Shown here piece by piece: positions 1-29,941 of a stretch of DNA of 64,000 nucleotides. The stretch comes from Blastocystis sp. Blastoise (Eukaryota; Protista; Bigyra: Opalinata). Within the stretch, counting starts at the first letter, position 1. Each line of letters begins with the position of its first letter. The stretch is from the NCBI GenBank assembly GCA_039096225.1, contig JBBPEB010000033.1, positions 1,054,001 to 1,118,000 on the forward strand. Direction: 5' to 3'. The notes under the pieces are model-generated. The model was not told where the DNA came from. It made no database searches and worked only from the letters and a program-made list of their open reading frames with translations. The position numbers and the translations under genes were made by a program.

Positions 1-820
1 TTTACTTTGGTGATACCTGTTGTTCTTATGAAATTAAATTATATAATTCTATTGAAAAATATTTCAATGAGTTTATTAAACAAGAAAAATGTGAATTGTA
101 TGATATATATATATGTTTATATATATGTTTATATATATATATGTTTATATAAGTTTATATATATGTTTATATATGTATACTTTTATAAATATATATATAT
201 ATATATATATGTTTATATAATTTAGAATAGATAACGATAGTAAAGAACAAAGATTATTAGTGAAAAGTATATATATAATATCAATATTAATAATGTATAT
301 ATATATATATATATATTTAGATCTATTTAACGAAGAAAATAATAAGAAATTTCTAGAATATTCTGGAGTGTTTGATATACTTGATATAAAAGATGTCACT
401 TTACAATGTATATATCTAAATTTTTACGTATATATATAAATATGTTAACTATATTTAGATGGTTTTTCTGAAGATATTCCTTATGAATATATATATCCCT
501 CCAATTTACATGCAATATTTCCTAGATTAGAAATATATACTTTAAAATGTATATATATAAGTTAAAATTATTTTTATATGACAATATAATATATATAATA
601 ATATATTATATATATCTAGTATATTATTATTGTACAAAAAAAGAGATTCGAATAAAACCAACTGATTCACATTATAATGAATTATTTGATGAATATAAAC
701 TGATTTATAATGGTTATAATGATTCTATTAATCATAATGATTATTATCAATATCAAAAAACAAGAATTAGTTCATGCGATTTAAATCGTTATTCGATTCG
801 TAAGGCTTCTTTAGATGGTG

Positions 821-861
<41 letters not shown>

Positions 862-1353
862 GAAAGTAATAAGGTCAATAAATCTATAATAATTGATAAA
901 CAAGAGTTAAATAAAAATAATGAAGCGAAACCTGATTTATATATAGACTCACTTTCTAGATATTCACGTGAATATAATCAAGAAAAGATGAATCTCTATA
1001 AAGGTTTTTATAGAAATAGTGAAACGACAATCAGTACATGTACATTTACATATATAGATGAAAATGGAGGTATATATAATGAACTATACTACACTATAAT
1101 AATAATATATATATATATTATCTATATATATGGTGATAAATAATAATTAATGTATATTCTATAGTAAGAGATATACAACATCCAATTATGGAGTATGCAT
1201 ATATTAATAATTAATAATAATCAAATAATGAAATCTATTTCTATTAATTTATATATATATATATATATAGTTGTTCTGAACAATTAAGTGAAATTACAGC
1301 ATATCTATTAAGATTACCTATTTGTAAACAATTAAAAAGACTAACAAACTTAC

Positions 1354-1397
<44 letters not shown>

Positions 1398-4300
1398 TAA
1401 TATATTTTATTATTATATTTTCTTATTATTTAGATTATTATAAATTCAAATTACAAGTTGCTACTCCTCCTTTTTTAAAAGCTTTAAATGAAGGTCTATT
1501 TGATTCTATTCAAATATTTAATATACTTGATTGTATATATGATTATTATTTATTTTCTTTTATATATTCATATATATTCTTTTTATTATATATATATTTT
1601 TTATTATATTTATTCATATATATTCTTTCTACATTTTATAATATTTCATATTTATAGTTATTAAACCATATTGTTTTCTTGAATATATACAATTATTTAA
1701 GGATATAATAACAACTCATGTATTTCCAAATGTAACTACACTAGAAATATCGGGTATATTTTTATATTTATATTCTCATTATATATATATACACTATTAT
1801 TATATTATAGATTCCAAATTTCATGAAAACATACAATTTCAATGCGAATTTCTATCATTATTTCATAGAGAACAATTTCCTAATTTACATATATATAATA
1901 TAAAACCTATTACTTCTATTCTATCAAAATATAATCAATACGAAATTTCTTTATTATTTCCTATATCTTTTTTAAATTTAATAAATATAATTGAAATTGG
2001 TTCTGTTGGGTTAAGCTTTGTAAAGTGCGAAGAAGATGTGATTCTATTCAATCAACTAATTGAACTTTCAAAAATTTATTCATCTATTATTAATAGTATG
2101 TTAATAAATATTATAAAAATATATATATTATATATTATACTATTAAAAATATATTTTATTTATATATATAGTAAGTTTATGTCTTGATGATTATAATTCA
2201 TCATGGAATCAATTTCTCAAATCTAATCTATTTATTAATAATCTTAAGTTAAATTGTATATATATATATATAATGATTATTATTTATATTATTATTTATA
2301 TAATAAAAATTATTATTATTCTATATATATATATATATATATTAGTTAAAAATATACAAAAGAATAAAGTTAAATATACTCCAATTGATTTAAGTCAGTG
2401 TACAATTAAAAAATTTTGGTTTGGTATATCTATATATATTTAATATTATTTAAAATATATGTATACATAGAAATGTATATTTGTTTTGATTATTTAATAA
2501 ATGATTATAAGAATTTCTTTTCAAATATGAATTCTAAACAATTAGAATATGTAAATCTTAAATGTATGTACTTATATATTATACTTTTTATAAATATTAA
2601 TATATATATATATAATTATTTAGTTTTATTGTTATACTTGTAACTATTTCTTTTTTATAATAATAATTATTATAGTTTTATATGATCACTACCAAAAACA
2701 ATATTTTTATATAAGTGATTATTTAAAAATGTTATCAACTATTAATTATTCTATGGTTAATACTCTAATTATTGGTATATACAATATATTATATATATAT
2801 GTTTAGTTGTATATAATATATATAGAAGATGAATATGATAGTAGACCTGTGTATGATAAAGATAGTGATAGTAATGATAGTAATGATAGTAGTGATAGTA
2901 GTGATAGTAGTGATAGTAGTGATAGTTGTGATAGTAGTGATAGTTGTGATAGTGATAATAGTAATGATAGTAGTGATAGTTGTGATAGTGATAATAGTAA
3001 TGATAATAGTGATAGTGATAATAGTAATGATAGTGATAATAGTAATGATAGTAATAATAGTGATAATAGTAATGATAATGATAATAGTAATAATAATAAT
3101 AATAGTGATAGTGATGATAGTGATGATAGTGATGATAGTGATAACAGTGATAATAAAGATGATAATAATGATAATGATAATGATGATATTAATAATGAAA
3201 ATCATAACAGTGATAATAATAATATTAAAGATGATATAAAAGATAACAATCAAGATGATAATAAAGATGGTAATGATGATAATAAAGTTGATGATAAAGA
3301 TATAGATAAAGATGATGATAATGATAATGATAAAGATAAAGATAATGATAATGATAATGATAATGATAATGATAATGATAAAGATAAAGATAATGATAAT
3401 GATAAAGATAAAGATGATAATAATGATAATATTAGAGATAATAATATTGATACTATTAAGCATGATATAAACGATAATAATAATACTATTAATAATAATA
3501 CTAAAAATACTATAACTAATAATAATACTATTAATACTACTACTAATAATACTAATAATAATAATAGTAATAATAGTAATAATAGTAATACTAATACTGA
3601 TACTAATACTAATAATAATAATAATAATAGGTATACTATTTATATTAAAAAGTTTAATAACAAATATAACAATATTATAGATTATTATAGGATAGTTAAA
3701 TGCTATAGTGATTTTAAAAATACTTCTAATCCGAATAATAATAAAATTACTTTAAAAGAAGAAAATAATAATTTTAAAACAAATTCAGCTATGTATAAAT
3801 ATATATCAAAATTTTCAAATCATTTAGTAAAATTAACTATAAAAAGTATACTATAAAAATACATATTTATTTAATGATATTCTTTTATTAATAACATTTT
3901 ATACTTTTTTTAGGTGAAAAAATTGATTGTGTTCTTATATTACAAACAACAATTACAATGAATTTCTGGACAAATATTGAAGAACTGTCTTTAAATTTTT
4001 GTATATAAATCTAATAAATTTATATATATATATATATAGATAAAAATCATAAAATGTGTGATATCTTTCAAACTCTTTTTGATCATTTTGAAAATAATTC
4101 TTTTTCAAAACTGAAAACATTAACAATAGAAAAAACGTGTATATATATTTATATATATTATTAGTTAATATGTTTGTTCTATACATATAGATTTTATGAT
4201 TATACATCTTATTCTATATTATAGGTTATAAAAATGAATTTCAAGAGATGATTTCTTCTATAGAGATTCTTAGAAACTATAAGCAAATTGACAAATCTTC

Positions 4301-5108
4301 TCTAGAACAATTTTCTTTTGAGTTATATTTTCCAAGTATTTAGAAGGTTTATTTTTTGCTACTATTCGCTATTATTTATTTTTCTTATTAATATTATTTA
4401 TTTTTCTTATTAATATTATTTATTTTTCTTATTGATAATATTTATTCTAATAATTACATTTTTTATTTTTTATTAAAAGAATTCAATATATGTATACTTA
4501 TAATCTATTTATTTTTAATATATATTCATCATTATAATATATTTATTTTTTTTAGCATTAAATATTAATATATTTTATTATTTAGCTCCAGATGGATTTA
4601 CTGATATTACATTAAATAATCTATTAGAAATATTTCCTCTGCTTTCTAATTATTTAAATAGACCGATTATTTCTATTTCTATGTGTCGTTATGCTATTTA
4701 TTATGATTATTCTAATGATTATTGTAATTATATATATAATGAGTTACAACAAGAATATTCAAAAAATATTTTATATCTCAAACTTTGTATATATATATAT
4801 ATATTATTATTATTTTTCTTAGTACTTTTTATAATAATAACTATATATATATATTTCTTTTTAGTTATTAGAGATTCTGCATTTTTAGATCAAATTCAAA
4901 ACTTATTTTTAAAGAATTCATTCCCTTATTTAATTGCAATATATAATTATACTAGTATTCTATTATATATAAATAATATATATATATATTAATACTTATT
5001 TATATAGTTGATGTAAATATTACTTCTTTTAATGAAAAACTGAAGGAATCTATGATTCAATATAATCACCCATTAACAATTTATAAAACAAACATACAAA
5101 GACTTTAA
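1..5108 (+). CDS. BTB/POZ-like + LRR-like family protein, copy A (5'-partial; 20 introns in window; D/S/N-rich insert)
   Basis: Hand-spliced through 20 GT-AG introns with an open frame to TAA 5106-5108. Shares the motifs IPYEYIYPSNLHAIFPRL, TPPF...GLFDS, TTHVFPNVTTL and FPNLHIY with copies B-D. The start lies upstream of the window. Confidence 0.8.
2830..3630 (+). repeat. Coding low-complexity (GAT/AGT/AAT)n tract encoding D/S/N/K/T-rich sequence in copy A
   Basis: ORF 2807..3856 reads DSSDSSDSCD...DNDNDKDKD...NNT, in frame between flanking LRR-like exons. Confidence 0.9.
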
Positions 5109-6003: not shown

Positions 6004-8060
6004 TTATTGTCTCCAGAATCCATCAACTATTTGTTTAGAATTTTTACAATCAACATAGGAAATACAGGTTGTTTTTCCTACTTCTAAAAACATACTTTTC
6101 CCTCCATACCCAACTGTAAATTTAAGTTCAACTATATATCTATTCCAATTACTACCATAAGTACCTATATGTATAGGACTATATAAGGATTCATATAAAT
6201 TAGCTAAGGAAATAAGTGTAATATATGGTATTTCTTTTAATGTATCCATATATTGATTATTTCTATTTGGATTATTATAAGAAATCATGGATACTGCATT
6301 TTTACTGTAAATTGATAAATCTTGAATAGATTTATTCTCATCTGCATTTATAAAAACTGTCATTTTTTCTTTATTAAAATATTTACGAAGTATAATAACA
6401 GGATCATAATAATATGAATTATCAACTAAAGGCATCTCTAAAAATTTATCACCATGTCTTATATGTATATCAGCATCATAAGAGTCTTGACAATGAGGAC
6501 AATTTTCTTTTCTATAATTCTTAATCCATTCTATTGTTCTTGGATTCATTCTTGTTAAGAAAGTAATTGCTTGTATTCTCCAATATATCACACATTCTTC
6601 TTTTATTAAACCATTTATATCACAGAATTCTTGTACAAATTTAGGAACAGTTTTAGGTCTACTTAAGAAAGGAGTTGAATGTGTTTTTGCATATACATAT
6701 TGATCATTCTCACTTTCTCTTTGCATTTTCTCATAACGATTATAAGATCTAAAATCAGGAATACGTTTATCTAAATCATTTAAAGATAATATAGATTTAC
6801 CATCAAATGTAATATTAGTAATTGGAGAAAAATAGCAATTATAAGTTTTTTCTGTACAGAAATCTTTATCAATCCAATTAGGAATTCCATTATCTACATA
6901 CATAAGAATTCTATTTTGATTAATAGCTACTGCTAACATACATGTAAATACATGCATTAAAGATCCAAAACCAGAAGTCCATCGACCTGCAAATAAATAA
7001 CGAATATTATAATTATTATTCATATCTCCATTTAAAGAACGAAATTGATGTTTCCATATCCTATGTTGTATATAATAAGTACCATAAATAGGATGATAAT
7101 CTTGTTTATTTGATTTAAACCAATAATAACTGTCATCAGGAAATGATGTATATTGACTATTTATAGATTCAAAATCTTTATTAAATGACATATGAAAGAA
7201 TGTAGATCGATATATATATTGAAGATATTCACTTTGTAAAGGATAATAATAATCTAATATAGAAATTATTTGTTTTGTATTATAATTAGCAACAAGTCTC
7301 CAAAATATACCAACTTTATCACGATGCTTATTTAAATTATTCACTAAATTATTATATATTTGTGGATATTCAATAGGAAGAGTAGGAGAAGGTGTAGGAG
7401 GAATAGTAGGAGGAATAGTAGGAGAAGGTGTAGGAGGAATAGTAGGAGGAATAGTAGGAGGAATAGTAGGAGGAATAGTAGGAGGAATAGTAGGAGAAGG
7501 TGTAGGAGGAATAGTAGGAGGAATAGTAGGAGAAGGTGTAGGAGGAATAGTAGGAGGAATAGTAGGAAGAATAGTAGGAGGAATAGTAGGAGGAATAGTA
7601 TGTTGATTAGTAGGAGTCATAGTGGGTGGCACAGTAGGACTAAGATTTGGAATCATTGATTTCTTGTCATCAACTAAATTATTCTGCGACAGAGAGGATC
7701 TAAAATGACAAAAATATATGTATACTATTTTAGATTGAAAAAAAATGTAAAATAAAAAGATAATATTGTTAAAAACAATCAAGTGAGAATCAAAGAAATA
7801 AAAAATATATACGTATTGCTTGCTTTGCTACCAATAACAGAAGATACAAGGATATGTGATTGAATAATTCTGTAATTCTGTGGATTATTTTCAATAATAA
7901 TGAATTTAGATTCAGTAGAATTCTACAAAAAAATGAGGATAGAATCCGTATGAAAATATAAATAGTGAAGAATACATACTTCATAGCGAGAATTACTAAA
8001 TACTAAAATAAACGACATTAAACATATGAATAAAAGTAAACATATATATTCTAGTTTCAT
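6004..8060 (-). CDS. GT23 / alpha-1,6-fucosyltransferase (FUT8-like), type II membrane protein with Pro/Thr stem
   Basis: The ATG at 8060 gives the signal anchor MKLEYICLLLFICLMSFILVFS. Two introns (~7979-7923 and 7812-7700) join it to ORF 6004..7782. Fucosyltransferase motifs SGFGSLMH, IHIRHGDK and IGTYGSNWNRYIVEL are present. Confidence 0.8.
7378..7640 (-). repeat. 12-nt coding tandem repeat encoding (PPTI/PSPT)n mucin-like stem
   Basis: Repeated aggaggaatagt / aggagaaggtgt units on the + strand. Confidence 0.9.
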
Positions 8061-9493: not shown

Positions 9494-11458
9494 TTAGCAT
9501 CTTCCCCATACTTCATATTCATCAATAATAAAAGTATTTGATGTATATTCATTTTTAGTATTCACAAATAAAGCATTACGTTGAGAAGTATTGACTTCTT
9601 TATATGATTTCGCTTCACAAGAAGAAGAATAATATTCATCGCAATGATCTCCTATCATAATATCACTGCTAAAACAAGGACCATAAGAAACATCACAATA
9701 TATACCTTTATTCTTATTTCTAGCACCATAACCATAACGAGTAGGAGGAATATTATGCTCATTACTTAATGTAAATAGAAACTCTTTAGAATGAGGCTTA
9801 AAACCTATATTTATATATATATATTCATTTTTTTTAAATATCAAAATAGTTAATATATAAATAGAAAAAATATATAAAATAACGAAATATATATATATAT
9901 AAAATAAAAAAAGTAAATATAAATAAATACCACCAGATTTATCCCAATCTTGATCTGTATATCCTCCAAATATATTAAATTGTCCATTATGACCTCTCTG
10001 TTTTATTATAGTTACTGTTTCTCCCATATCATCGCAACATCTATGAAAAGCTTTTGAAGCAAAATGATAATTTTTACCATTATATAATAATATTATTAAT
10101 GTTTATAATAAATATAATAAATATAATATATATAATAAATATAATAAATATAATATATATAATATATATAATAAATATAATAAATATAATAAATATAATA
10201 AATATAATAAATATGATAAATATAATAAATATAATAAATATAATAAATATAATAAATATAATAAATATAATAAATATAATAAATATAATAAATATAATAA
10301 ATATAATAAATATAATATATATAATAAATATAATAAATATAATAAATATAATAATAAATACTTATATATAATTTTCCATTGTTTATCTGTACCAAGCCAT
10401 TTAAGTAAGGCAGTTTCATACGATTTACGAGTTAAAACAGTTGATCGATGAAAACATTGAAATGGTGTTATAGCATCAGTAGCTATTTCTTTACCTTTTT
10501 CACCAAATATACTTTGAAATTCATTTATAAAAATATCTTTATTAATAGAATTTATTTGTTTTTCTTCAAGTTCAAGATAACCATCATAAATATATTTATT
10601 TATATAATTCTCATATTTATAGTCAACACTAATATAATCATTACGTCGACTACAGGAAACTACCATAGAACCAATTACAGTTTTAGAAGGAATATACTTA
10701 TATATATAACCATCATCATAATTCATTATATATTTTTCCCATAAATTATGTTCTTTTAAATAATCACTTATAGAATCATCACATGAACCATTTACTTCTA
10801 AATCTACTTTATCACCTTTTTTATATTGTTTCATATGATTATCTCTTCTTTCTCTACATTCTATTAATTCTACAGGAAGAGATAAATTACAAAATTCAAT
10901 TAAATCTATAAATTCTAATTTTTCATCAAATGAATATTTCGAAAAATTTATTTCTTTTCCATTTAAATAATCCATAAAACAATAAATAAAAGCATCATTA
11001 CCATCATAACCTAGAAATATTGTTCCATCATTTGTTCTTAATTCACTTAAAGATTGCTCGTAGATATATGAATAAGGAATAGATTCAATTAATTGTTTTG
11101 AAATTTGAAATATAGGACCATTATTAGTAAAACGTATAAAATCGATATCCTGATTGTTGATATCATTGACATTTGATTCATTCATAATATTCATTTCACT
11201 TTCATTGAATGCTTCGATTTTCTTTTCCATTAAAGGAGAAGATAAATCCAATTGTGAACCCATACATGGTTTCACAGTAATATTAATATCGCCTTTATTA
11301 TTAATACTAGAAGCTAATTTTCCTAAAAGATCACCAAGCTTTAATAACGAGGATAAAGAACTCATCAATTGTGTTGTTAGTTCTCCATAAACTTGAATAC
11401 ATTCCTTCAACTGGCTTGCTTCACCACTTGAACTTAACACACTTTCTTGTACAACCAT
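9494..11458 (-). CDS. BTB/POZ-like + TLDc domain protein (2 introns)
   Basis: KCTD-type BTB-like segment IRFTNNGPIFQISKQLIE...RTNDGTIFL...FMDYLNG. TLDc motifs WLG...WKIIY, FHRCCD, IFGGYT, EFLFTL, YGPCF and EYEVW. Introns are 10361-~10080 (no AG) and 9930-9805. Confidence 0.8.
10082..10360 (-). repeat. Intronic 9-mer minisatellite (TATATTTAT)n
   Basis: Tandem ataataaat units on the + strand fill most of TLDc intron 1. Confidence 0.9.
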
Positions 11459-12959
11459 AAGCAGATAAAAGGAGAAAAATAAAGATAATAAAAAAATATT
11501 TATTACCCTGCTTATTTTGCTTTTTCACTATTTTTTTTAATTCCTTAATTATTCCCTTATTTTGCATTTTAAAGTGTAGCTACTTTTTTAATTGATTACT
11601 AATTATTGTTTCTCACAAAAATACTCTCTATGTTTCTTAGAATAAAGTGTTCATTGTAGATCAGTATATTAATAATTAATATAAATAGAAGATTGTGATT
11701 TGATTATAGATGTAAAATACTCTAACAATAAAATAGTATTCTTATTTATGTCATAAAACTTGATTGATTGAAAGCTTTGTTTGTAATTCTCTTATTTTAC
11801 ATATATTTGTTTTTATTTATATTTATACAGAATTCATATATTTATATTTTATAATTATTTTTTTCTAGAATTCTATTATTATGTTTTTCTTGTAATCATT
11901 CCCTTTTTATAACTATATTATGAATTATTTTGAATTTATATATATCTGCTCATCGAAAAGAATCTTCTCTATAGTCTTTAGATGCAGTTATTCCTCCTCT
12001 TTCATGTAATTTCTATCTTCTATTTATTGTTACTCTTCCATTCCTATTTCATAGTATTTTATTCTCTATTTTGAATACAATAATGAATTAGGATATCTTA
12101 TTCAATTATTATTATTATGATTCATAATATATTATCTATATATATATATAACAACTGATTTTGATAGTATATTCAAGAAGATATTCATGTTAATATATAT
12201 GGTGTATATATATTGTTAAACTATTCATAAATATAATATATAAATAATTTCAAGTATTTTTATTTTTGATATATTTATATATTAAAAGTTATTGATTATT
12301 ATATTATATAATAAGAATACAGTCATTATCAATTTAAAAATAATATTTATTTCTTTATTTGATAACAAATAATTATAGTTAACTCTTATAATTCATTTAT
12401 TGAAAATATTTTTATTTGTATTTTTATTTTTATACATATAAACAATATATTCTTCAACGGTATATGTTCAAACAGAAAAATAGAATTCAATAATACTATA
12501 GAAAACATATAGACTATAATTAACTAATGAAATTTAGTGAAAGTGTCTTTTTTAAACAGTAAACAAATTTAATATTATTGTAATTAGAATAGCTTTTCAA
12601 ATAATTTTAGAGTATTATATTACGTCACTTTCAGTACATAAAATAATAGGTATCAAGAATGATCATGAAATATTCCTCTTCTTATATATAATAACCACTA
12701 TTATAAAATATAAAATAGCTACTAGTTCAGTATACTTTTGTAATAAATAAAATTCTATGGAAATAATTGTAATTTTTCACTAATTCTAATTACAATATAC
12801 CTATTTTCATGGCAACGATAAATAAGTTCTTCATAGTGATTCTTATTTAATACTTGTAATCATAATTCACATTATTTTAAATCATTATTTCTTTCAATAT
12901 CTTCAAATGAAACAATGTTTTTTATTTATATAAATAATTAATAGAAATAATTTGAAAAA

Positions 12960-13068
12960 GAAATATATATAAAAAAATGATAATTGAATATAATCAAATA
13001 AAAAAATTAGAAATATATTAAAAAAATGATAATTGAATATAATGAAATAAAAAAATTAGAAATATATT
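12960..13068. repeat. ~49-nt direct tandem duplication just downstream of copy B
   Basis: aaaaaatgataattgaatataat(c/g)aaataaaaaaattagaaatatatta occurs twice. Confidence 0.85.
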
Positions 13069-16000
13069 ATTTCTTTTCTATGTTGATTTCATAATATACA
13101 CGATTTTCTTGAATAAATAGCGAATTATTCATTTGGTGTTTGTATATATTGAGTTTTTCATCTGAAATATCATTACCTAAATAATAGAATATCAAAAGAA
13201 ATAATTATATACTTTTATAAATAATAAAAAACTCTTTCAATTTAGGGATTTATCCGGTAGTAATAAAATCTATAAGTTTTGATAATTGTTCCTCATTATA
13301 AATATATATAATTAAATGAATTTATTATGTAATTATTTATATAAATACATAATCCTAAACTTCTTATGTGTTGAGTTTTATTTTCATTCATACATCTAAC
13401 AACGTTTCTATCTCAAATTTACTCATCGTTTCATCTATATATATATATATATATACCTTTTGTACCAATAATTGTATTCATAAATAAATGACTATCATAT
13501 TTACATCGAAAAATTGAATTATTCAGATCATAAAAGAAATAATTAGATGTACTATTAAACATATCTATACAATAACAATATTAATCAATATGAATAAAAT
13601 CAATATTATTATTAACATACCAACTAATCGAACAATACATGATGATAAAAAGTTGTTATTATTTATATATTCACAAAATATTTTAATAAAAGAAGTCCAC
13701 CATTTATTATTGTCATATTTCGGTATACATACATAAGTTATTTAATAAATATAAATTTTAAAATGATGATAAGGTTAAATATAAATATATATACAAATAT
13801 TGATATATTTTAATTTAGGGAAATTTTTTGTAGTGTATAGTTTACAAAAATTATCATCTGGTATATCCTTAATATCTAAAGTAATATTCATAAAAATATA
13901 TAGAATGAAATATATAATATACTGTATTAACATATTATTATTATAATATATATATACCTAGAATTAATTGAGTTGTATTATGGAAACAACCTTTAGGAAT
14001 TAATCGATTTATAAAAGTCATATAACAAACTAATAATAATAGTTAATATTGATTATATAAATTATCATTACACATAATAATCATTATATATATATATATA
14101 CATCTTAATTCAACAATAGAAGCCTTAGAAATTAATTTAATCATTATATTTTCATATGCAGTTAAATACTTAGATGATAAGTCTTCTTCCATTGAACTTA
14201 CTATATTTATATATAATTATTTGTTTTATAAATATATAATATACAATTAATCGTTAACTTATGAATAGTATTAAACTTATTGTCATTAAAAAGAGTTGAT
14301 ATCCATGTTAAATATTTTACACTTATATTATCATCAACTATAGATATTATTTAAATCATAATAACTATATATATATCTATAAAGAATATACATGAAATAT
14401 CTAAATCATTCAGATGTTCTAATATAGTACTCTTTAAGAATCTTTCTAATGAATCTCTTTCATCAATTTTACTTAGATAACTATTATCATTATGATTATC
14501 ATCACTATCATCATAATTATCACTATCATTATCATCACTACCATCATCATCATCACTATCATCATAGTTATGACTACCATCAGAGCTATCACTAGCATTG
14601 TTATAATAGTTTTCTATAAATGAATAAATATTAATAATAGTATATAGTAACAATAAATTGATTAAATGTAAATGAATACCTTTAATTTGAAAAAATAAAC
14701 TATCAACTTTTTGCTTATTATTCTCAATATAATCTAACTTTTTAAAACTTTCAAAATTAGAAAAATCAACTATATATATTAAAAGATATAGTATATATAT
14801 ATATAATATATATATATAAAATAATAAAAAAATATTTCATACTAGCAAGTTTATGAAATGAAATAAGATTTTTCGCTAATAATTCATTTAAACGAGGAAA
14901 ACAATAAATATAATAACCTATATAAAAAGTAAATAAATTTAATTAATTATATATATATATAATACAAGTATGAGTATCATTTATAACTATATTAATCATT
15001 TCTATATGAATTGAATGAGTATATGCATAATAATTGAAAAGACGAATTGTTTCGTCTTTAAGATTATCACCAATCCCATGTATACGAATAGTATCTATTA
15101 TAGATAATAAATTCACTGGAAATAGAGACTCAGAATTTTTAATTTCTAGAATATTAAAAAAGTTTTTATTTATTATTAGTCTATGCATATACTTTCAGTA
15201 ATATTATAATCGATAATATGTAATTTTGGGAAGCATTCTTTCTTTATTGAAGATAATTGGAAAGAATCTATAAATTATAATAACATTATATATATATATA
15301 TACCATAATAATCATTATGGTATATAAGTTCAGTAACATTAGGAAATACATGAGTTGTCATTATTTTATTCAATAGATTATCATCAATTTGTTCAGTTAC
15401 CATCTCAACTATATAGAATAATAATATTAATAATAATAATAGTAATTACAAAAAAATAATACTGCTGTAAACACTAAATGTTGTTAATGAATCGAAAATA
15501 CACTCTTCAAATAATTTCATAAAAATAACAGGATTATAATGAATAATATATCCTAAAATAAAATATTTAGTTTATTATATATATATTTACCTGAATTTAA
15601 AATGATTTTTGAAATAGACAAATAAATAGGAAGACATAATAATTGAGATATACCATGTTCAGTATATACTATAATAATACTATTTAATATATAAAAATAC
15701 AAAATAAAAATATTATTTACAAGAATTTCTTATCATTTGTTTTAGCTATATATATAATAATAATAAACTAAATAATATTCTTATATTATATATACAATCA
15801 TATTCAATTTTGATTGAATCATAATTTGAGTAGTCATCTTTTTCTCGATTTATTTCTACTTTTGAATAATCATTTGTATATATATCTTCATTAACAATAT
15901 ATTTATATAATTTAGGTAAATTAATTTTTTTTCTTTTCTCATTATAGGAATCAATCAATTTATGAGAATAATATAATTTATTCAGATCTAAAGAAGAAAT

Positions 16001-16461: not shown

Positions 16462-17032
16462 TAAAAGAAAACATATATATATATTAAAAAAAACATATAT
16501 ATATATATTAAAAATATAAATATATATATATTAAAAATATATATACCATAAATAATTATATGTTTTTCCTCTAAATTGAATAATTCCATAGGTACTCGTG
16601 ATTCAGAAAATTTAACACAATAGTTATATATAGAGTAATTATTATCTTTCAAATAATTATAAAACAACTCTTTAACATGAAAAAGCAAATCATTTTGTTT
16701 TTCTTTATCAGCTGAAACTGAGTATTCAACAAGTGTTTTATATATATCATAACTATCTTTCAAATCTAATGTAAATATATCCACAATTTCTTCGTTCAAA
16801 AAAGAAATCACTTTTTCCATACTCAATGAAGGCATATCTACATAATAACTACCGTCATCATATTTCTCAGTGTGTTGAATAATATCTTGAAATGGTAATT
16901 TAGGATATTTCTTTATAAATTCTCTTGGAATCCATAATTGTTTCTCATCTTGAAAAGTAAATAAGTCTAAAATAGAATAGCATATTATTATTCATATTCA
17001 ATACATTTATCTTCAATTAATTTTTCCGACAT
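13067..17032 (-). pseudogene. BTB-LRR family copy B, probable pseudogene (5' half intact, 3' half disrupted)
   Basis: Starts MSEKLIEDKYLFTFQDEKQLWIPREF. Relative to copy D it has a +2 nt insertion (~15215), a -1 nt deletion (~13402), two acceptors without AG (~13741, ~13302) and an in-frame TAA at 13250-13252 (G*IPKL vs GEIPKL). Confidence 0.75.
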
Positions 17033-18189: not shown

Positions 18190-18899
18190 CTTATAAAAAT
18201 ATTCTCATCGATTCTTTTAATAATAATATGTACACATTCTTAAATATATATGTATCTATTAATCTAATAATTATTTTCGTTTTTATTATATTTCTTCATC
18301 TTTCGATCTCTTCTTTCGTTGCAATTGATTAATTCTATAGATAATATTAAACCACAACATTCAAATAAATCTAATATTTCTAATTGTTCTTCATAAGAAA
18401 AAGAATTTAAATCTACGTTTTTTCCATTAAAAAAATCTAATAAATAATAAATAAAAGCATTATTTCCAGTATAATCAAGAAATGCAGATCCATCATTCGT
18501 TCTTTTTTCTTCTTCACGTTGATCATCAATAAAAGAACCTTTTAAAGAATCTAAAACAGATTTCGATATTTGAAATACAGGACCATCATTGGTAAATCTA
18601 ATGAAATCAATATCATTATCATTATTATCATCTTTATTCATCTTCATATCTTCATTATTCTTATTTTCATAAACACATTTCTTTTCAAATTCATTTCTTT
18701 CGCCTTCTTTCTCAATACAATCATCTCCAATATGTTTTATAAGTCTATTTATCGATATTCCAGAATGTATACCAAGATTGATCAGTGATCCAAATACACG
18801 AACTACGTCTTTCATCAATTCTTCATATACACTGATATCCTCCTTGAATTGCTTAAATCAATTGACATCAAAAATAACAACTTTTCTTTCACTATATTA
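18190..18899 (-). pseudogene. Truncated BTB-TLDc paralog (BTB part only)
   Basis: DIDFIRFTNDGPVFQISK...RTNDGSAFL...ERRD matches the 9494-11458 gene. There is no ATG at the homologous start, an in-frame TGA at 18858-18860, a stop at 18264 and no TLDc exons. Confidence 0.8.
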
Positions 18900-19419
18900 T
18901 AAAAAACAAAAGAAAAAAATTTAAAAATTTTTATTTCTTTTTTTATAGTTTCTTACATAAATCAGATTTTATATTAAAACATATTTATTCGTTGGTCTCC
19001 TTATATACTTTTAAGATGAATAATTATCATAAATAACACATATATTCAATATCATCACAATTACAAAAATGATTCTCTACGAATATCATCCAATTCATGC
19101 TCTAAATCACTCAGAAAAGCTAGAAAATTATAAAAAATAAATAATAATTTCAAAATATAACATTTATTTTCATTCTCATATACAATTTAGTCTTATATCT
19201 GATAAATGATATCACTGAACAAATTACAATCATAAACTATTATTAAAAATTAAACTGGTTCTAATTCTCTTACTCAAGAAAAACTAAATTTAAAAAAACT
19301 TAAAAAAACATAAGTTTTTTATTCTTATAGTTTCAACAAATTTATTAAACTATCAAATAATTCTATAAAAAGTATATACAATATCTATAGTAATTCATAG
19401 AATATAGGATATTGTTAAT

Positions 19420-22400
19420 ATGAGTACTCCGTCAACAATCACTTTGAGTGATTCTAACTCAAAAAGTAATATAGAGTTATATTCATAATCTAAGTACTAT
19501 AGACACTATTCAGTTTATCTTTCAAGATGAAGTTAAGGTTGGTATTCCAATTGACATTTTAGAATTATGTCCAGAGTCAATATTGAGTTTGACATATACT
19601 TCAGAAGACTCTTTAGATAATGAAGATCATTCTTGCTATATTGATTACCATTCCTATTCCATAGAAAAAGTGATTTCCTATCTCGAAGGAAAACTTTCAA
19701 TTGATTGTTCTCTGTCTATTACTGAACTGTGTAACATGTATAAAACATTTTATATTTTCTGTCTTCATGGAGCTTTCTCTCATTACTTTGAGTTATCCAA
19801 TATTATACAACAAGCTCTTCAAACTTTTTTAAAGAAAAATAATTGTACAATGTATGTTCATTTATATATATATATTTTTTCATATATATTTTATAATAGT
19901 TGTAAAAAAACAATATCTTCTGATATTACTGAATATATATTGATTATTGAAGGTAAATAATCTTATCTATATATATCAATATACAATAATAATAATTAAA
20001 ATTATAGGTATTATCTCAGAAGAACGAAATAAAAAATTTCTTGAATATTCCTGTTTATTCGAACTAATGAATATCACACGTGTTCATCTAAAATGTATAT
20101 TTTAGCATTTCATTGATTATATATATTATTATAATAAAAATTATATATATATATATAGATCATTATTCAAATGAAATATCTTATGATACTATATATCCAT
20201 CAAATATACATGAACTATTTCCACGATTATTAAGATATGATATAGAATGTATGTATTTATTTTATTTAATAAATTATTTTTATTTCAGATTATAATTGAT
20301 ATTAATTATTTATATTCTATAATTAATATATATATAGTAATCTATTATCCAAGTACTAAAACAATAAAAATAAAGAATGGAGATTATTTATATGATTATT
20401 TTTCTAGATGTGATTATTCAAATAAAAGTATTTTAACATATATATATAATATATACTTATATTATTAGGGAGATATGGTGGATATATAATAGATTATATT
20501 CCAAATCGTCGTTTCCCTCCTCTTAACATCAATAAAGATCCTATTGAAGAACAAAAGAAAATAATAAAATTTCAAACAGAAATTGAAGTTGTAGCAGAAC
20601 GTATAAAAAATGATCTAACCACTTATTCAAAAAAGACAAAGAAATCTAAAGAAAACATTGTTTCGAATTCTGATTATTCATTTTCATCAATATCAGATGA
20701 TAATTCTATCTCTTCTGTTGCTTCTAATCAACCTATATCTGCCAATATATCAACTAAAGAAAATAATTCGTTAAACTCGGATAAGATGATTGATTCTTTG
20801 TCTTCTTCAATTAATAACAATTCACAGAACCATTTTTCTTCTCTTCTTAAATCTTCTGTTTCTCCTCCTTCTCCGTTTCTTCCTCCTCCTATTATTACAA
20901 ATATTTCTTCTTCTTTTCTTCATCCTCATATTTCTCCTCCTTCTCCTCCTTCTCATATTTATCCTCATTCTCCTTCTTCTCCTACACTTCTTGACTTTCC
21001 TCTTTCTCCTTCTTCTTCTTCTCTTCTTCCTCATATTTCTCCTCCTTCTCCTCCTCCTCACATCGACCATCATGTTTCTACTCCTTCTCTTATTTATCCT
21101 CATACCTATCCTCCTCTTCTTCCTTCAATTCTTTCTCCTCCTTCATTTTTTTCTTCTTCTATTGTTTCTCCTTTCATTGTTGCTTCTTTTTTTCCATTTA
21201 CCTCTAATTATCCATTTGTTATTGAAAGTGATAATGATACATATGAAGATTTTCATTTTATTTCCAGATACTATTCATCAAATATAATTGTTCAATACCC
21301 TTATTATTATTCAGATACTTATAATAATCACATATTAAATGATAATAATTATCAAGATAATTATAACGTTATATCTACAAAAAAATCAACGTTTTATTTT
21401 CATTTCAAAGATAATAATGATAGTATATACTTAATTTTTTTAAATACAATATATATATGTATATATAGTAATTGACTATGAACACCCAATATTAGAGTAT
21501 CTATTTATTATATATATATATAATTTATTTTTATAGAATTCCTATTATCCCTCCAGATTCTATATTTACTTATCTATTAAATATGCCAATTTGTAAGCAT
21601 CTTAAAGAGATTTGTGTTTCAGATAGTATATATATAATTATTTACATATATAAATCTTATTATATTATTATAATAGAAAAGATATTTTGGGAACTTCAAA
21701 TAGTAACTCCTCCATTATTAACATCTTTTCTAAATGATCTTTTTGATCTTCATACAACTATCAATCTAACTGATTGTATATATATTTATTATATGATTGC
21801 TAATATATATTTTTTTTCTATTTTAAATATATATATAGTGATAGATGGAAGTTCTTATGGTCATTATAAACAATTTCTAGAAGATTATATTTCTACTCAT
21901 ATATTTCCAAATGTAACAACACTTCGAATTGATAGTATATATGTTATTATTATTAAATATATTTATATATTTATTATTATTGTTACTAGTATATAATATA
22001 TATATATATTATATATTCTATTATACAGATAGAGGGAATAAGTCATTTGATGAGAAAATGTTTAATCGATTTCTTTTATTATTTACTTCTGAACATTTCC
22101 CAAAATTACATATTTATGATCTTCAACATTATTCTATAAATAATTATGAATTTGTTACAAGTATAGATAGTATACTTCAAATACCATTAATAGAACAATT
22201 GGATACTATGTATATGACTATATCAACGGAACAAGAAGTATCATTAGATCATTCTAAAAAGAAATCATACCTTGATTCAATATTACAAACAATAAAGAAA
22301 TTAAATAATAATACAAACTATCAACTATGTTGTATATACTTATTATTATATATTTATTGTATTCTATCTATAGTTAATAATTTCATTTTCTTTAAGAATG

Positions 22401-23085
22401 ATATACTATCAGAATTATTATTACAAAAGAATGTTATCTTTAATAAAACCTATTTTTATTGTATACTCATTTTTAAACATATATATATTTTAAATAATAC
22501 CTATATATAGTAGATAATAGTACTATTGGAGCTATATACTCAGAAGATACACATTTTTTGAAGGATTATGAGTTTAAAGAATTATATATTCATGACAAAG
22601 AAGCTGGTATATTTTTATATTCTTTCATTATATATCAATAAACCCAGATTTATAGTAATCATGAATATTTTATTTATTATTTAATATATTTATAATTTTT
22701 CCTTTCATTTTAAACTTATATCCTTTTTTTTAAATTTTTACGTTATAAATAGTTAGAAATGATTATGAAAAATCAAAATTAGAGTTATCAATTTTAAGGA
22801 ATGGAAATAAAAACATAAATAAATATCAAGATCAATTGGAAATATGTATTTGTTAAGATTATTATTTTTCTTATTATATCTATAATAAAAACTATATTTA
22901 GTTATATATTCATCTGTATTCTCTCCTAATGAAGTCAATAGTTTTACTAATATTATGAATTCATTAAATACGGAACATATTGAAACGATTACTTTTTCTT
23001 GTATATATATTTATATAGTATCTATATTTTTCTTTCTGTTTATTTTCATCTTATTTAATACTATATATGATAGTGTTTTTATTCT

Positions 23086-23116
<31 letters not shown>

Positions 23117-24606
23117 CGAGAAAACTATCACATTTCATTACCTGACTTTGTTTCTAGTTTTAAGAAAGCTAATTATCCTCATTTAAAGAAATTAACTATT
23201 AGTATATATATATATATATATTCATTCTTTATTAATCAATAATACTTTTATATTAACTATTTATTATTAATCATTCAAATTATAGCATATATTAGTATGT
23301 TTGCAGGCGTAACCCTTGAAGATATAAAAATAAATGCAAAGAATATGTCTTTGTTATTATCATGCTTTTCAAATAGTCTTAAAGAATTAAATTTAGATTG
23401 TATATTCTAATTTTTCTTATTCTTAATATATATATAGTAGAACCAGATTATTATTATTTATCTTATTTTTATTATATATATAGTAGAACCAGAAAATGAT
23501 TATATGGAAACTATTTTGAAAGAAACAGTTAATTTTCCGTTATGGGAGAATATAGAATCTCTTTCTTTTCCAACAGGTAAATTTAGTTTATATAATATAA
23601 TATCAATATAATATTTATATATATATAGGACGTTATCATCGTGTCACTTGTCTTTTTGATTTTTTTTGTAATAATTTCATAAATAATAAATTATTACAAT
23701 TGGAATCATTAGTTCTTACTGGTATTTAATATTATCTTTATTTTTTATTATTATCATTAATAATAATTGCTATAATTAAATCTCTATAGGTAAAAATGAT
23801 TATGAACAGGACTATTTACTTTTTATTCATCAATTATTGAATGATTTAAATATATATAATTCTAAATCAATAATTGATGAGACTGAAAAATCTCAAAGCT
23901 TTTATTGTATATATTTGTCTATATTCTCTTCCATACAATAAAGTGATTATTCTCATTTTTCATATATATGTATTAGCAACTTTATATCTATCTAGGTGTT
24001 GACTGTATATATCAAGTCAAGGATATTATATGTAATTTTGAATCATTACAATTAAAATATCAAGAACCAATAAAATATATACATATGTCAAGAAGATTTG
24101 ATCATGTTGTTGAATTTAATAAACGATATTGGAATTCTATATATATCTTGTTACAAACACAAAATATGAATTCCTTAGAATCTTTATATATGTGTATATT
24201 ATTACTTTTAATTTTTATTTATTGTTCATTAGTTTATATTTTATATATTATATATAGATATATATGAAGAGAATGACTTAATAAAAACTGAAGAACTTTT
24301 TAATGAAAAGAACTTTCCTAATATGAAGGAGTGTACAATTTATGTAATAGGTATATTTATATATATTATATAAATAAACTTTTAATCTATATATATACAT
24401 ATATTTATATATATTTATATATATTATATATATAAACTTTTAATCTATATATATATACATATATTTATATATATTTATTCAATAATAGTATATATATTAA
24501 ATTTATTATAGAATCACTCTTTATGACACAATCATGTGAAGTTTTGAAGAATCGAGCGAAAGAATCGAGAATTTCATTTGTTGTTAATTCTTTTATTTTA
24601 GAATAA
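19420..24606 (+). CDS. BTB/POZ-like + LRR-like family protein, copy C (~23 introns; P/S/H-rich insert)
   Basis: Reads MSTPS...IQFIFQDE...YIDYHSYSIEKVISYL, with IYPSNIHELFPRL, STHIFPNVTTL and FPKLHIY. Spliced frame ends at TAA 24604-24606. Confidence 0.8.
20830..21200 (+). repeat. Coding (CCT/TCT)n pyrimidine tract encoding a Pro/Ser/His-rich insert in copy C
   Basis: ORF 20786..21475 reads SPPSPF...HISPPSPP. Confidence 0.85.
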
Positions 24607-25349
24607 TGGTGATTCCTTTTAAAGTTAATATATTTTACTATAGTTATATCTACTTATTTTTAATACTCATATATATATATATTTTTTTATGTGCCATTTA
24701 TAATCGCTTTAACTACTTTTATATCATATTTTGTGTTGTTTTGCTTATTTTAAAATTCAATGACTTTTAACAATTAAATCTCAAGAGTATTGTCATGTTA
24801 ATACTTTACTATTTTTTACCTCAACTTTATATACATAAATATAAAATTTTATAATTTTAAATAAATATCACAAAGTCTTGTGATACTTATAACATAAATA
24901 AAAATGCTTAAAAGTTATTATACTTAATTAATGGTAGTTTGTAAAAAATATAAACATCTATTAGTTACTTTTTTATTAGTACATATATGTATCAATACGA
25001 AAAGGTCAACATAAAATAAAAAGACTATTCCACATTCTATTTGATATAGAACACTATTATATGTCAATGTTATTCAATAAACATAATTTTAAATACTATT
25101 ATTTATTCATTTGTATAATCATATTTAAATATATACTATTATCACATATAATAAACATTTAAAAACTTTTAGTTTCAAATATATAAATTTAAACAAACAA
25201 AAACTAAGTGTTATAAAAATAATTATATATTAAAGTATAATAGAAATATGTATATAAATAAAAAAATCAGTGAATATGAAATTATATATGAAATAATGAT
25301 TTTAAGAAAGATAAGTATTATAAAAAAAAGAGCAATATATACATCTGTA

Positions 25350-25483
25350 TTAAAAGTCATCATAATTTCTATTATTAGTTAAGTCATAAAATACATGATT
25401 CTTTTTAATAAATGTAGAATCTTTCACTTTTTGTTTATATTCATTAATAGCTTCTTCTGATGCTTCTAATTCAGATGAATCTA

Positions 25484-25514
<31 letters not shown>

Positions 25515-28500
25515 CCATATCTACATGCGAATTTCTTTAATTTCGGTATTTCACCTGATAATACTAAATCTAATACATCAAATAATAATGTATCATTGTA
25601 AAAATCTAAATATAAAAAATATTTATATAATGTTATAATAATACTAAAAAAACTTACATATATCAAAATATCTTAAATTTGGGATTTGTTGTTGTTTAAT
25701 ACATTTAATAAATGTTTTGATTTCATTTTCAGATATTGATTCATCTTTATATATATATATAGATATATAGATAATAATCAGTAATAAAATATACCAAATT
25801 GATTACTAACAATAGTTTCTACAGATAAATTAACAGTATTCTTTATTTGTTGAATAGATTCGTTAGGATAGAAATAGAAAATACGATAATCACCAACGGT
25901 CTCTAGGAGAAGAATTCAAATAATAATAAAAAACTATTAAATAAATATATATACCATCCAAAAATATAGTACTTAATGATGGGAAATTATTACTATTATA
26001 TGAAGATAAAGTATCTATGAAATTATTGAAACATTCACTTGATTTTACATCTATATATAATTATATGATATAAAAATATATATTCAGAAAATATATATTA
26101 ATAGTAATCAGAACATTCATTATCAAGTAATCTTAACATTTTAGCATATATATGATTGATTAATCAGTATTTTATATAATCAATTTATATAAAACATGTA
26201 AATATATCAGAAGAATTATATTCATAAAGAATATTTTTGATAAATATTTAACTATATATATAAATACATATTGAAAAACGTTTCAATTTAGCGAAGTTAT
26301 TCTTAGTATATGATTCTAAAAACGCATTAATTGGTATATCATTCATTTCTAAATAATAATTATATAGTTATTTCTTGAAACTATTAAATATAATGAACAT
26401 AATAAAAAGCATAATAATAATAACTAGTATATACCAAAACTTAATATAATTGCATTTTGGAAACCTCCACTTTGAATTAATTTCATTATCATGGTATCAT
26501 AACCATATCCTAACAAGAATGAATCATAATTATATTATTATTTATTATAATAATAATTAAAAAACAATTGATGTTCATAAATTTAATACTGACTAAATAT
26601 AATATACCTTTTAAAGTAATAAACGAAGCTTTACTAACTATTTTTATAAGGATATTTTGGAAAATAGAGAAATATTCTGGTTCAGGATTCTTTTTAAGCT
26701 CAGGTACTATAAAAATAGATAAATTTATAGATAGATATAATTCTAGTATATACAATCAATAGTTAAATATTCTATGCTACTAAATGTGTTATCGTTAATT
26801 AGAGTATCAATTCTTTTTAATTCATTTATACATATTTTACTATAAACTATATATATAATATAATACTAATAATAATACATGTATATATAATCATACATGA
26901 AAGACAACAGTCTGCTAGCTTTTGTAATATACTACTATTAAATAGATGTTTAAAAGCATCTTGAATATCAAGTAATTCGTGAGTTTCATCATCACTACTA
27001 TCTTCATCACTATTATCACTTTCTTCATCACTATTATTATCATCATCACTATTATTATCATCATCACTATTATTATCATTTTCATCATCTTTATTATCTT
27101 TATCATCATCATTACTTTCATTATTATCATTACTTTCATCATTATCATTAATACTTTCAACATTACTATTATTATCATTATTATCATCATCACCACTATA
27201 ATTATCATTACTGTTATCATTTTCAACACTATTACCCTCATCATCATCACCACTATAATCATCATTACTGTTATCATTTTCAACACTATTACCCTCATCA
27301 TCATCACCACTATAATCATCATTATTATCACTATTATCATCATCACCACTATAATTATCATCAATATTATCATTTTCATAATCACTACTTTCTTCATCAT
27401 TATCACTCTCATCATCATTTTGATAATAATAATAATAACATTTTAAATCTCGATAATCATAGCCAATATAATAATCTATAAATTATATAATATAATTATA
27501 TGAATTCATACTAACAAAGTTCATTTTGAATGAATCAACTTTAACATTTCTATTTTCAAATTCTTCCAATAAATCATCAAATAATGGCTCATACTTCTCC
27601 ATATTACAAAGATCTATTAAAAACAAAATTTAAGAATAAGTAAATAATTATAAAAATCAAATAATAAAATATACTACTTAGATTAAATGTATATGTAAAA
27701 AGTCCTTTTTCAAGAATTTCTTTCTTATGAGGAAATAAATCAATAACAGTAGCTATATATACATGAAAATAAATTTATAAATATAATTAATTTACAATTA
27801 ATTAGAAACAAAAAAACCAAGTATATATATACAGCTTGAAAAAATATGGATTGAGTGATTATAAGCTAAATCACCTAAATAGATAGCATTCTTTTTCTTA
27901 TTATACCACGCCATATCTACATTTATTGTATTAATTAATGATAAAATTTGTTCAGGAATTTTTTGTTTGAAAATATTGCTACCTATGATATATATAATAT
28001 ATTTAACAAGAATATAATATATATACCATATTTATAAGTAATAATATGTAATTTTGGGAAGCATTCCTTCTTAATTAATGATAATGTGAAAGTTTCTATA
28101 TATACATAATAAACAATATAGACAAATATTTAAATATATAGCAAATGCTATATATATACCATCATTAAGAAAAAGTTCTGTAACATTAGGAAACACATGA
28201 GTTGTCATTAAATTTAAAAATTCATCATTATTAAATAATTTATTAAATTTCATAACTATATAAATAGATCATTAAAAATAATAAAAAAATCTTATATACT
28301 CCAGTTTGAAGCCAGTGAGGTGAGAGAATCAAAATAACCATCTTCAAAGGCTTTCATAAAAATAATAGCAATTTTTTTGTCGATATAAAAAATTTTATCT
28401 ATATATTGAATATCAAATAATTATAAATATTTTCTTTTTTATAAATTTATTTATTTACCTGATTGAATATCTAACTTCGAAAAATGAAAACTAGATGGAA

Positions 28501-29091
28501 AATGTAATAATTGAGCTAAACCAATTTCTGTATTAATTTTGGAACTATACCTATACAAATATATTTAAAATAAAAGTGTTTAACATATATAATTATAATA
28601 TAAATACGAGAATACCGAGAGTGTCATGTCATCTGTAAATATAATTTTAAGACAGATATATATATATATATATATATTTAATAATAATATATATATATAT
28701 AAATGTTAAGTATATATAAATATAAAAAAATACTACCATAATTAATAGCTACACTATCTTTAAGTGAATAATAGATATCTTGACTGATTTTAACTTGTGT
28801 ATAATCATCTGAATATACAGCTGGTTCAGAAACAGCTTCATAGAGTTTAGGTAATTTATTTTCAGATTTTCTATCAGAATAAGAATCTTTTATATCCCAA
28901 TCAACATTAGTATTTTCTATATCAAAAGAATTATTCTTATTATATTCATCCATCTCTAACTCAGTATAATAATCAAATTTCTCATCATCATCTATTCTTT
29001 TACCATTATTTTCACAAAAATTGGTATATTCATGTATATATTCATCAGTATTTGGATTTAATAATGTATCACCTTTCAAATAGTTTGTAAC

Positions 29092-29140
<49 letters not shown>

Positions 29141-29369
29141 ATAAATTTTTAACTGTGAAACTAAGGGGAATATATCTTGAATGCAAGATGGATAAATATA
29201 TTCTGATGGCATATTTGGTGCATATTGATCTATATATATAATCATTATTTATTGTATACTAATTATATATTTACATGTAATTTCAATATAAGTAATATTC
29301 ATCATTTTAAAAAGAAGAGAATAACGTAATAATTCATCTTTTCGTTGAGGAGTCATTAAGCCTATATAT

Positions 29370-29454
<85 letters not shown>

Positions 29455-29941
29455 TACCATTTAAATAAATATTCTGGTTGTTAGGATCAAATAGTATTTC
29501 ATAACTAGTCGAATAACATTTTGTACAATCAATATAATCATTTTCTTTAAAATAATCATAGAATAATCTTTTAATATGCGCTAATAAAATATTTTGTTCT
29601 ATGTTATCAGTTATGCATGAGTATTCAACAAGCGTTTTATATATATCAACACCATCATTTAAACTTAATGAATCAATATCCATGTTTTCTTCCATTAAAA
29701 ATTGAATCATATTTTCAATACTCAATGAAGGCATATCTACAAAAAAGCTACCATCTTCATACTTTTCAGAGTGCTGGATAATATCATGAAATGGTGATTT
29801 AGGATACTTCTCAATAAAATCTCTTGGAATCCATAATTGTTTCTCATCTTGAAAAGTAAATAAGTCTAAAAAATAGAATAACACATTTAATCACATTCAA
29901 ATACATTTCTCTTGAGTTGGCTCGGCTAAAACTTCTGACAT
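25350..29941 (-). CDS. BTB/POZ-like + LRR-like family protein, copy D (closest to copy B; acidic insert)
   Basis: Reads MSEVLAEPTQEKYLFTFQDEKQLWIPRDF, with YIYPSCIQDIFP, MTTHVFPNVTEL, KECFPKLHI and GEIPKLK. Stop TAA at 25352-25350. No lesion seen in the junctions checked. Confidence 0.8.
26985..27440 (-). repeat. Coding D/E/N/S-rich tract including a ~57-nt tandem unit
   Basis: The + strand unit atcatcaccactataat..ttttcaacactattaccctc is repeated. The sense frame reads DDESDNDEESSDY... Confidence 0.85.

Follow-up and report, generated by a model that had tools for sequence, protein, structure and literature searches.

A large family of putative BTB–leucine-rich-repeat genes in Blastocystis sp. 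Blastoise, with one-repeat, phase-1 exons in a fixed order

Gene families that encode leucine-rich repeats (LRRs) with about one repeat per exon have been described in Tetrahymena and in brown algae. The Tetrahymena family comprises thousands of genes with variable arrays, exons of exactly 90 bp, and introns in phase 2 (PMC6564038). The LRR-ROCO and NB-ARC-TPR families of brown algae have been proposed to encode immune receptors (PMC3341825, PMC11378527). The pairing of LRRs with a BTB domain has been reported from a bacterium, the Parachlamydia-related endosymbiont UWE25, which carries 43 BTB-leucine-rich-repeat genes, while only a handful of BTB proteins were noted in unicellular eukaryotes (Stogios et al. 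2005, PMC1257465). Here we describe a family of putative BTB-LRR genes in Blastocystis sp. Blastoise, a tortoise-gut protist, which was recognized in a window of 64,000 nucleotides (C22:1054001-1118000, where C22 is contig JBBPEB010000033.1). The window is about 20% G+C and belongs to a genome of 33.3 Mb in 34 contigs.

Positions 1-29941 of the window contain four paralogous multi-exon genes of about 20 exons each, named wA, wB, wC, and wD, which were found by comparing all six-frame pieces against each other. Genes wB and wD belong to the main subfamily and wA and wC to a second subfamily, with about 30% identity between the two in the first large exon. A sequence-only reading of this region had proposed a diversifying receptor system of BTB and LRR domains, built from symmetric phase-1 exons that could be skipped, duplicated, or swapped in frame. 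The explanation that we favor, and consider reasonably probable, is a lineage-specific, expanded BTB-LRR family that was built by old exon duplication and by multiplication of whole genes and that likely serves as a repertoire of substrate receptors. Its members, at least about 180 loci including the four in the window, would be cytosolic proteins of about 700-900 amino acids, in which a T1/KCTD-type BTB domain encoded by one exon is followed by about 18-20 LRRs of the RNI/F-box type. A region of about 120 amino acids and an acidic low-complexity exon would interrupt the LRR solenoid.

The modular construction of these genes is visible in their intron phases. Splice models of wA-wD were obtained with a chain finder that has no phase preference and that combines codon log-odds from long open reading frames of the window with simple GT/AG scores; nearly all introns in these models are in phase 1, including 17 of 21 in wA. 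When public protein models were mapped exactly to the DNA, phase 1 was found in 65 of 68 introns overall, namely 19/19 in P0001, 17/18 in P0002 (which is wB), 17/18 in P0003, and 12/13 in P0004. The public gene models were built favoring introns supported by RNA-seq (PMC12129017). Furthermore, exon junctions anchored by hidden Markov models (HMMs) in 24 family genes were in phase 1 at 363 of 369 sites, and the introns at these junctions have a median length of 52 nt, the donor GTATAT, and the acceptor ATAG. By comparison, only 38 of 124 introns in non-family control genes were in phase 1 (Fisher p = 8e-58 for the excess in the family). The control gene at 31476-39769 (+), with about 40 introns, showed phases 0/1/2 in numbers of 21/7/13 (7/41 in phase 1), and the other control genes of the window gave 32/31/20 (31/83 in phase 1). 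Thus, the phase-1 bias claimed for these genes was confirmed, as was the claim that it is not a genome-wide property. The low share of phase-1 introns that had been noted in the neighboring gene at 31476-39769 was also found, but its earlier name, PA200, was not confirmed, with eight exons lacking a Pfam match; the use of this gene as a phase control is unaffected by its name.

The introns are also in register with the predicted repeats. An AlphaFold2 (AF2) model of P0003 was built on an alignment of 24 family sequences, and in this model all LRR-region introns (13 of 13) lie between -1 and +7 residues past the end of a β-strand, an arrangement with a chance probability of about 6e-7. Each exon would therefore encode a single repeat with its loop, helix, and strand. 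Consistent with this, alignments of the exon classes showed that LRR exons end in the strand consensus F/I-P-x-L-x-x-L-x-I, and the five exon-end peptides quoted in the sequence-only reading all lie at exon 3′ ends in the unconstrained splice models of wA and wC. The repeat exons are symmetric (phase 1-1) and carry one repeat apiece. One repeat per exon together with a near-exclusive intron phase, the pattern that characterizes LRR families of the Ectocarpus and Tetrahymena type, is thus found in Blastoise. As in Tetrahymena (PMC6564038), a protist carries a very large lineage-specific LRR family with about one repeat per exon and a single dominant intron phase, which accounts for more than 96% of introns in Tetrahymena, where ectopic recombination has been invoked. 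Unlike in Tetrahymena, the phase in Blastoise is 1, and the exons range from 69 to 150 nt with lengths specific to their position in the gene.

Structure prediction supports the assignment of the C-terminal part to a curved α/β LRR solenoid of the RI-like/F-box type, with repeats of about 24-34 residues and an LxxLxL strand. The AF2 model of P0003 has a mean predicted local distance difference test (pLDDT) value of 72.5, with about 87 over residues 10-125, beyond which helix and strand units alternate. Searched against the PDB with Foldseek, this model matched COI1, TIR1, Skp2, FBXL17, NLRC4, NLRP2/9, RanGAP, and RNase inhibitor at the top, with E-values to 2.5e-5, and all of the significant matches were LRR proteins at a probability of 1.00. 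Its neighbors in a shape search of ESM-Atlas were F-box-LRR proteins, PRAME, and LRRC8. The LRR fold that had been suggested from the sequence is therefore predicted by both searches, as a solenoid of the RNI/F-box type. P0001-P0003 show neither a signal peptide nor a membrane segment. RI-type LRRs on modular exons that share one phase and derive from exon duplication are also known from RNase inhibitor (RNH1) and NLRP genes, which carry about two repeats per exon, occur as single genes or small families, and lack a BTB domain.

The N-terminal exon is taken to encode a divergent BTB domain of the T1/KCTD type, again on predicted models. In the full-length AF2 model, the order of the BTB core (β1-β2-α1-α2-β3-α3-α4-α5) is found at residues 12-120 with a pLDDT of about 87. 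The N-terminal domain searched in ESM-Atlas returned BTB_2/BTB in 10 of 10 structure rows, with TM values of 0.57-0.64, and the feature matches were BTB as well. In addition, the Pfam profile PF02214 (BTB_2) matched many BTB exons of the second subfamily elsewhere in the genome above its cut-off, at 21.4-26 bits, and these exons are homologous to those of wC and wD (E 1e-8 to 1e-21). None of the window BTB exons and 24 aligned members passed the same profile, the best of them being one member at E 0.04. The element order, the Atlas rows, and the profile matches in the second subfamily together predict the BTB fold that had been proposed.

The family was uncovered with the BTB exon of wD (29458-29865, -) as a query, which gave at least 150 matches in its own genome among 266 first-look candidates. 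The main subfamily contains at least 121 BTB exons (E <= 5e-26), with 44-73% identity to the wD exon, and a search with the wC exon added about 60 BTB exons of the second subfamily, for a family total of at least about 180 BTB exons or loci. Nearly all of them are intact, as about 140 of the 150 exons scored were open and about 10 contained stops. Only 35 clusters matched in a set of 1.84 billion representative proteins. Six of six sampled clusters and 53 of 53 relatives of the LRR region are named "hypothetical protein [Blastocystis sp. Blastoise]". Apart from one fused model, these 53 relatives carry no precomputed Pfam domain, and none of them has an LRR domain. A scan of JGI metagenome contigs with the BTB alignment found no relative, and the words "BTB" and "leucine" are both absent from the main text of the genome paper (PMC12129017). 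Collectively, these searches suggest that the family is lineage-specific, with no relatives outside Blastoise in the databases searched. A literature search for other expansions of BTB-plus-LRR genes found only that of UWE25 (PMC1257465). Unlike the eukaryotic and intron-rich genes of Blastoise, the genes of UWE25 are bacterial, free of introns, and presumably encode secreted effectors, and no sequence similarity between the two families was detected.

Exon order was determined with 23 exon classes, each represented by one HMM, which were defined by cutting the family alignment at shared intron columns. The scan covered 24 genes, that is, the four of the window and 20 loci on other contigs, and the result on order refers to the 22 genes of the main subfamily. 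The order from E2 to E23 was identical in 22/22 genes, and the exon-class HMMs found no duplication or reordering of exons in them. The only classes that went undetected were E13 (six genes) and E19 (two genes), and in wD a divergent exon occupies the place expected for E13. The introns of the paralogs fall in common alignment columns and hence at homologous positions. Within the window genes, no similarity between exons of the same gene reached E 1e-3, which indicates that there are no recent exon duplicates. The fixed order, the shared intron columns, and the absence of intragenic duplicates argue that the array is old and that the gene was multiplied whole. In the explanation that we favor, an old duplication of an exon-plus-intron unit would have built the LRR array, so that every exon holds a single repeat and every strand is followed by a phase-1 intron, and the gene, once complete with about 23 exons, would then have been multiplied by tandem and segmental duplication. 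Further diversification would have come from point substitution and from conversion among paralogs. On occasion exons would also have decayed and introns been lost, events that the reading frame would survive because of the symmetric phases.

Compared to the LRR-ROCO and NB-ARC-TPR genes of brown algae (Zambounis et al. 2012, PMC3341825; PMC11378527), the family shares the stramenopile host, the LRRs with one repeat per exon, and the expansion. However, the algal genes undergo active exon shuffling and have variable repeat numbers, neither of which is found in Blastoise, and the partner domain in Blastoise is BTB rather than ROC-COR or NB-ARC. In contrast to the highly variable arrays of Tetrahymena, exon number and order are fixed, the BTB exon comes first, and the genes number in the hundreds. 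The combination of a T1-type BTB domain with RI-type LRRs in a eukaryote, of phase 1 with position-specific exon lengths, and of a frozen exon order distinguishes the family from these systems.

The history of the individual genes is a mosaic, as BTB-exon trees and LRR-exon trees are in strong conflict. In approximately unbiased (AU) tests, for which the clades were chosen after the trees had been seen, the BTB data rejected the clade (wD, L002, L004) with p = 2e-6, and the LRR data rejected (wD, L001) with p = 1e-7 and (L007, L009, L012) with p = 4e-63. This conflict indicates gene conversion between paralogs, and the nearest paralog switches along many family genes. A candidate tract was located in wD, whose DNA is 95-100% identical to that of the paralog L004, including flanks and introns, outside one patch of about 400 bp. 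This divergent patch (29367-29764, -) takes in the 3′ portion of the BTB exon together with the next intron, and we interpret it, from windowed DNA identity to L004 and the AU tests, as a gene-conversion tract. Perfect microsatellites, (ATT)n and (TATAATAAA)n with a 9-bp unit, lie within introns or gene ends at 29378-29454 and 10104-10354, the former bordering the patch. The swapping of exons anticipated in the sequence-only reading thus appears as homologous conversion between paralogs, and the idea of reordering is not borne out, as exons keep their position. That reading had named identical exon order with congruent exon trees and no alternative isoforms as the pattern that would speak against a diversifying system; the order was identical in the 22 genes, yet the BTB and LRR trees were not congruent.

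Duplication of large segments is also evident. A segmental duplicate spanning the whole of wD and the 3′ half of wC (21819-30377), identified by megablast and by paired BTB exon positions, recurs on C23, C15, and C25 at 85-97% DNA identity and is thus found on four contigs including C22. The duplicates measure at least 8 kb, as the fetched loci end within the copies. The BTB exon of wC has counterparts with 95-98% identity on C15, C25, and C23.

Introns have been lost precisely in several members. A total of 22 junctions in 8 of 22 genes (L016, L007, L008, L009, L010, L013, L017, and L019) lack an intron, often in adjacent blocks. In L016, which encodes P0004, nine introns are gone, so that E2-E4, E8-E11, and E19-E23 are fused (L016:250-840, 1491-1904, and 3079-3569). 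Such blocks of precise intron absence fit repair from spliced cDNA, which would record transcripts that were fully inclusive. Other exons appear to have decayed: in wB, no consistent splice joins were found around E19, E21, and E22, and the public model skips these exons in frame. A different case is E3 of wB (16327-16413, -), an intact exon of 87 nt with phase 1-1 and AG/GT flanks in the splice model and HMM junctions. The RNA-guided public model passes over this exon in frame despite its good splice sites, and the omission could be real exon skipping or a choice of annotation.

Sequence comparison of the paralogs showed a mean pairwise identity of 63% in the BTB exon and 54% in the LRR exons, in agreement with a conserved head and a more variable arm. 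Ratios of nonsynonymous to synonymous divergence (ω, or dN/dS), estimated by the Nei-Gojobori method (NG86), were 0.2-0.6 for the BTB exon and 0.45-0.75 for the LRR exons in most pairs. Pooled over 11 independent pairs, ω was 0.28-0.35 in the hydrophobic core, 0.59 on the exposed helix, and 0.70 on the exposed strand, and no structural class exceeded 1 in this pooled and crude estimate. The strand surface is therefore the least constrained and the head is more constrained than the arm, under selection that ranges from purifying to relaxed. Diversifying selection on the LRR surface, as implied by the earlier proposal, found no support in these values, even on the exposed strand and helix. In most pairs, dS of the BTB exon (0.36-0.55) exceeded that of the LRR exons (0.24-0.35) despite the more conserved BTB protein, and a difference in conversion history or codon bias is possible.

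Two of the rival explanations concern how the family evolves. The repertoire may be combinatorial, generated in RNA by the skipping of exons and in DNA by their duplication or swapping, as has been proposed for the brown-algal LRR-ROCO genes. All repeat exons are phase 1-1, and any of them could hence be dropped in frame; RNA-guided models omit recognizable genomic exons, among them the intact E3 of wB with its good splice sites; and the conflict between the BTB and LRR trees would also fit. However, the same exon order and content in all 22 main-subfamily genes and the lack of recent intragenic duplicates argue against this explanation, several of the skipped exons have no consistent joins and so suggest decay rather than regulated skipping, and the intron-loss blocks E2-E3-E4, E8-E11, and E19-E23 record fully inclusive mRNAs. 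We regard it as unlikely, and the earlier suggestion that variety arises through exon duplication, reordering, and variable repeat number is not supported. It is very unlikely, in our judgment, that the family is a largely functionless load of duplicates that spreads selfishly on segmental duplications while many copies decay. Such a load would account for ω values of 0.5-0.7, the recent duplicates, 8 kb or longer, on four contigs, the decayed 3′ exons of wB, and the lack of relatives outside Blastoise, but it is difficult to reconcile with about 140 of 150 scored BTB exons being open, with splice sites and phases retained at 363 of 369 junctions, and with a family annotated from RNA-guided models. 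Moreover, the ω of the core (0.28-0.35) is lower than that of exposed positions (0.6-0.7), which shows that selection maintains the fold.

With respect to function, the preferred explanation of a receptor repertoire draws on the conserved head joined to a variable LRR arm, on the likeness to F-box-LRR proteins, and on the presence of one cullin gene. The family is likely a repertoire of cullin-ligase substrate receptors, in analogy to F-box-LRR, MATH-BTB, and PRAME proteins. We infer that the BTB head would oligomerise or attach to a ligase of the cullin-3 type and that the LRR surface of each paralog would bind a different target. Like the F-box-LRR proteins (Skp2, FBXL, COI1/TIR1), the MATH-BTB proteins of Caenorhabditis elegans, and PRAME, the family joins a small conserved N-terminal docking domain to a variable binder and is a lineage-specific expansion (PMC1257465), and its LRR solenoid comes closest in fold. 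Unlike in F-box-LRR proteins, the docking domain would be a BTB of the T1/KCTD type, a role with cullin is assigned by analogy, and there is no relation at the sequence level. Several results weigh against the reading as BTB-LRR receptors. No Pfam BTB or LRR match was obtained in the window copies or in ten full-length public models (for LRR, at E <= 0.1), and a profile of the N-terminal domain searched against PDB sequences found no BTB, giving only a chance match at E = 1. The model of the isolated N-terminal domain was mediocre (pLDDT 69), with BTB ranked first by Foldseek at a weak E of 0.18, and VIA-align of this isolated domain gave a best Z of 4.2 with no BTB and no family prominent. 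A six-frame Pfam scan of the whole genome detected only one cullin locus (C15:290059-291924); either the set is reduced or other cullin genes are too split by introns to be detected. Among T1/KCTD BTB domains, many do not bind Cul3, and ω values of 0.5-0.7 are compatible with a family drifting under weak constraint. In a further alternative, the T1-type BTB is an oligomerisation module only, as in Kv channels and non-cullin KCTD proteins, and the products are multivalent LRR scaffolds or binders unrelated to ubiquitin ligases. The nearest structural families, BTB_2/KCTD, form tetramers or pentamers, the scan found a single cullin locus, and the adjoining BTB-like/TLDc genes bear a distantly similar head without a ligase context. 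Against this stands the overall shape, which is nearest to the cullin-ligase receptors of the F-box-LRR and PRAME types, and we hold this alternative to be doubtful though deserving some weight. A complex predicted from four chains of residues 1-112 received a score of 0.00, a value that speaks neither for nor against self-association. An immune-like intracellular repertoire appears improbable to us; in it, each paralog, possibly multiplied by skipping exons in frame, would direct a cullin-3 ligase to bacterial, viral, or transposon proteins, and gene conversion would generate diversity.

The four genes of the window are arranged as follows. Gene wA (1-5108, +) is a subfamily-2 gene whose 5′ end is cut by the window, as recognized by its splice model, BTB exon match, and paralog matches. 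Its BTB exon spans the window start (C22:1053823-1054092, exon match), and the splice model places the stop in the exon at 5008-5108 (+). Gene wB (13067-17032, -) corresponds by exact spliced mapping to public model P0002, a "hypothetical protein" of 787 amino acids (WA158_005739) with 19 annotated exons, from which E19, E21, and E22 are absent; its T1-type BTB exon lies at 16547-16966 (-). Gene wC (19408-24606, +; splice model) is convergent with wD and has its BTB exon at 19503-19851 (+). Gene wD (25350-29941, -), defined by splice models and exon classes, has about 24 exons with introns almost all in phase 1, starts at an ATG at 29941, and ends at a stop within the exon 25350-25480 (-). Its LRR array extends over 25516-28398 (-) by consensus of each exon class, with examples of LRR exons at 28160-28255, 28027-28095, 26268-26348, 25955-26050, 25658-25744, and 25516-25605 (all -). 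The acidic low-complexity exon of wD, class E14, lies at 26933-27475 (-) and has counterparts at 2826-3630 in wA and 14392-14613 in wB.

Genes of another type are interleaved among the BTB-LRR genes. A non-family neighbor at 9494-11461 (-) encodes a BTB-like region and, after it, a TLDc domain, as seen by Pfam and alignment, and the BTB-like region matches the family BTB profile weakly (E 0.0016). A second gene of the BTB-like/TLDc type was recognized by similarity and alignment from its N-terminal exon at 18267-18857 (-), and the TLDc part was not found downstream of it. Copies of this N-terminal exon (18260-18895) with 84-85% DNA identity occur at L015:5699-6310, L016:5117-5750, and L017:5745-6331. 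As these copies adjoin BTB-LRR genes on other contigs, both families seem to have been duplicated together. A separate open frame of 592 amino acids at 6004-7782 (-) contains a long proline/threonine repeat of the PTIPPT type with a period of 12/36, and the large region after this repeat gave no Pfam match.

The family makes up about 2% of the 8,547 annotated genes of Blastoise, and all members returned by protein look-ups and searches bear the name "hypothetical protein" and lack a Pfam domain relevant to the family. After Tetrahymena and brown algae, it represents a third independent protist case of single-phase LRR genes, and its frozen exon order separates genes that were built by exon duplication from genes that are still shuffling. 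The blocks of intron loss and the measurable gene conversion make it a good natural system in which to follow the evolution of a multigene family in a very AT-rich genome. As a candidate lineage-specific machinery for protein recognition, the family may be of importance for the biology of Blastocystis.

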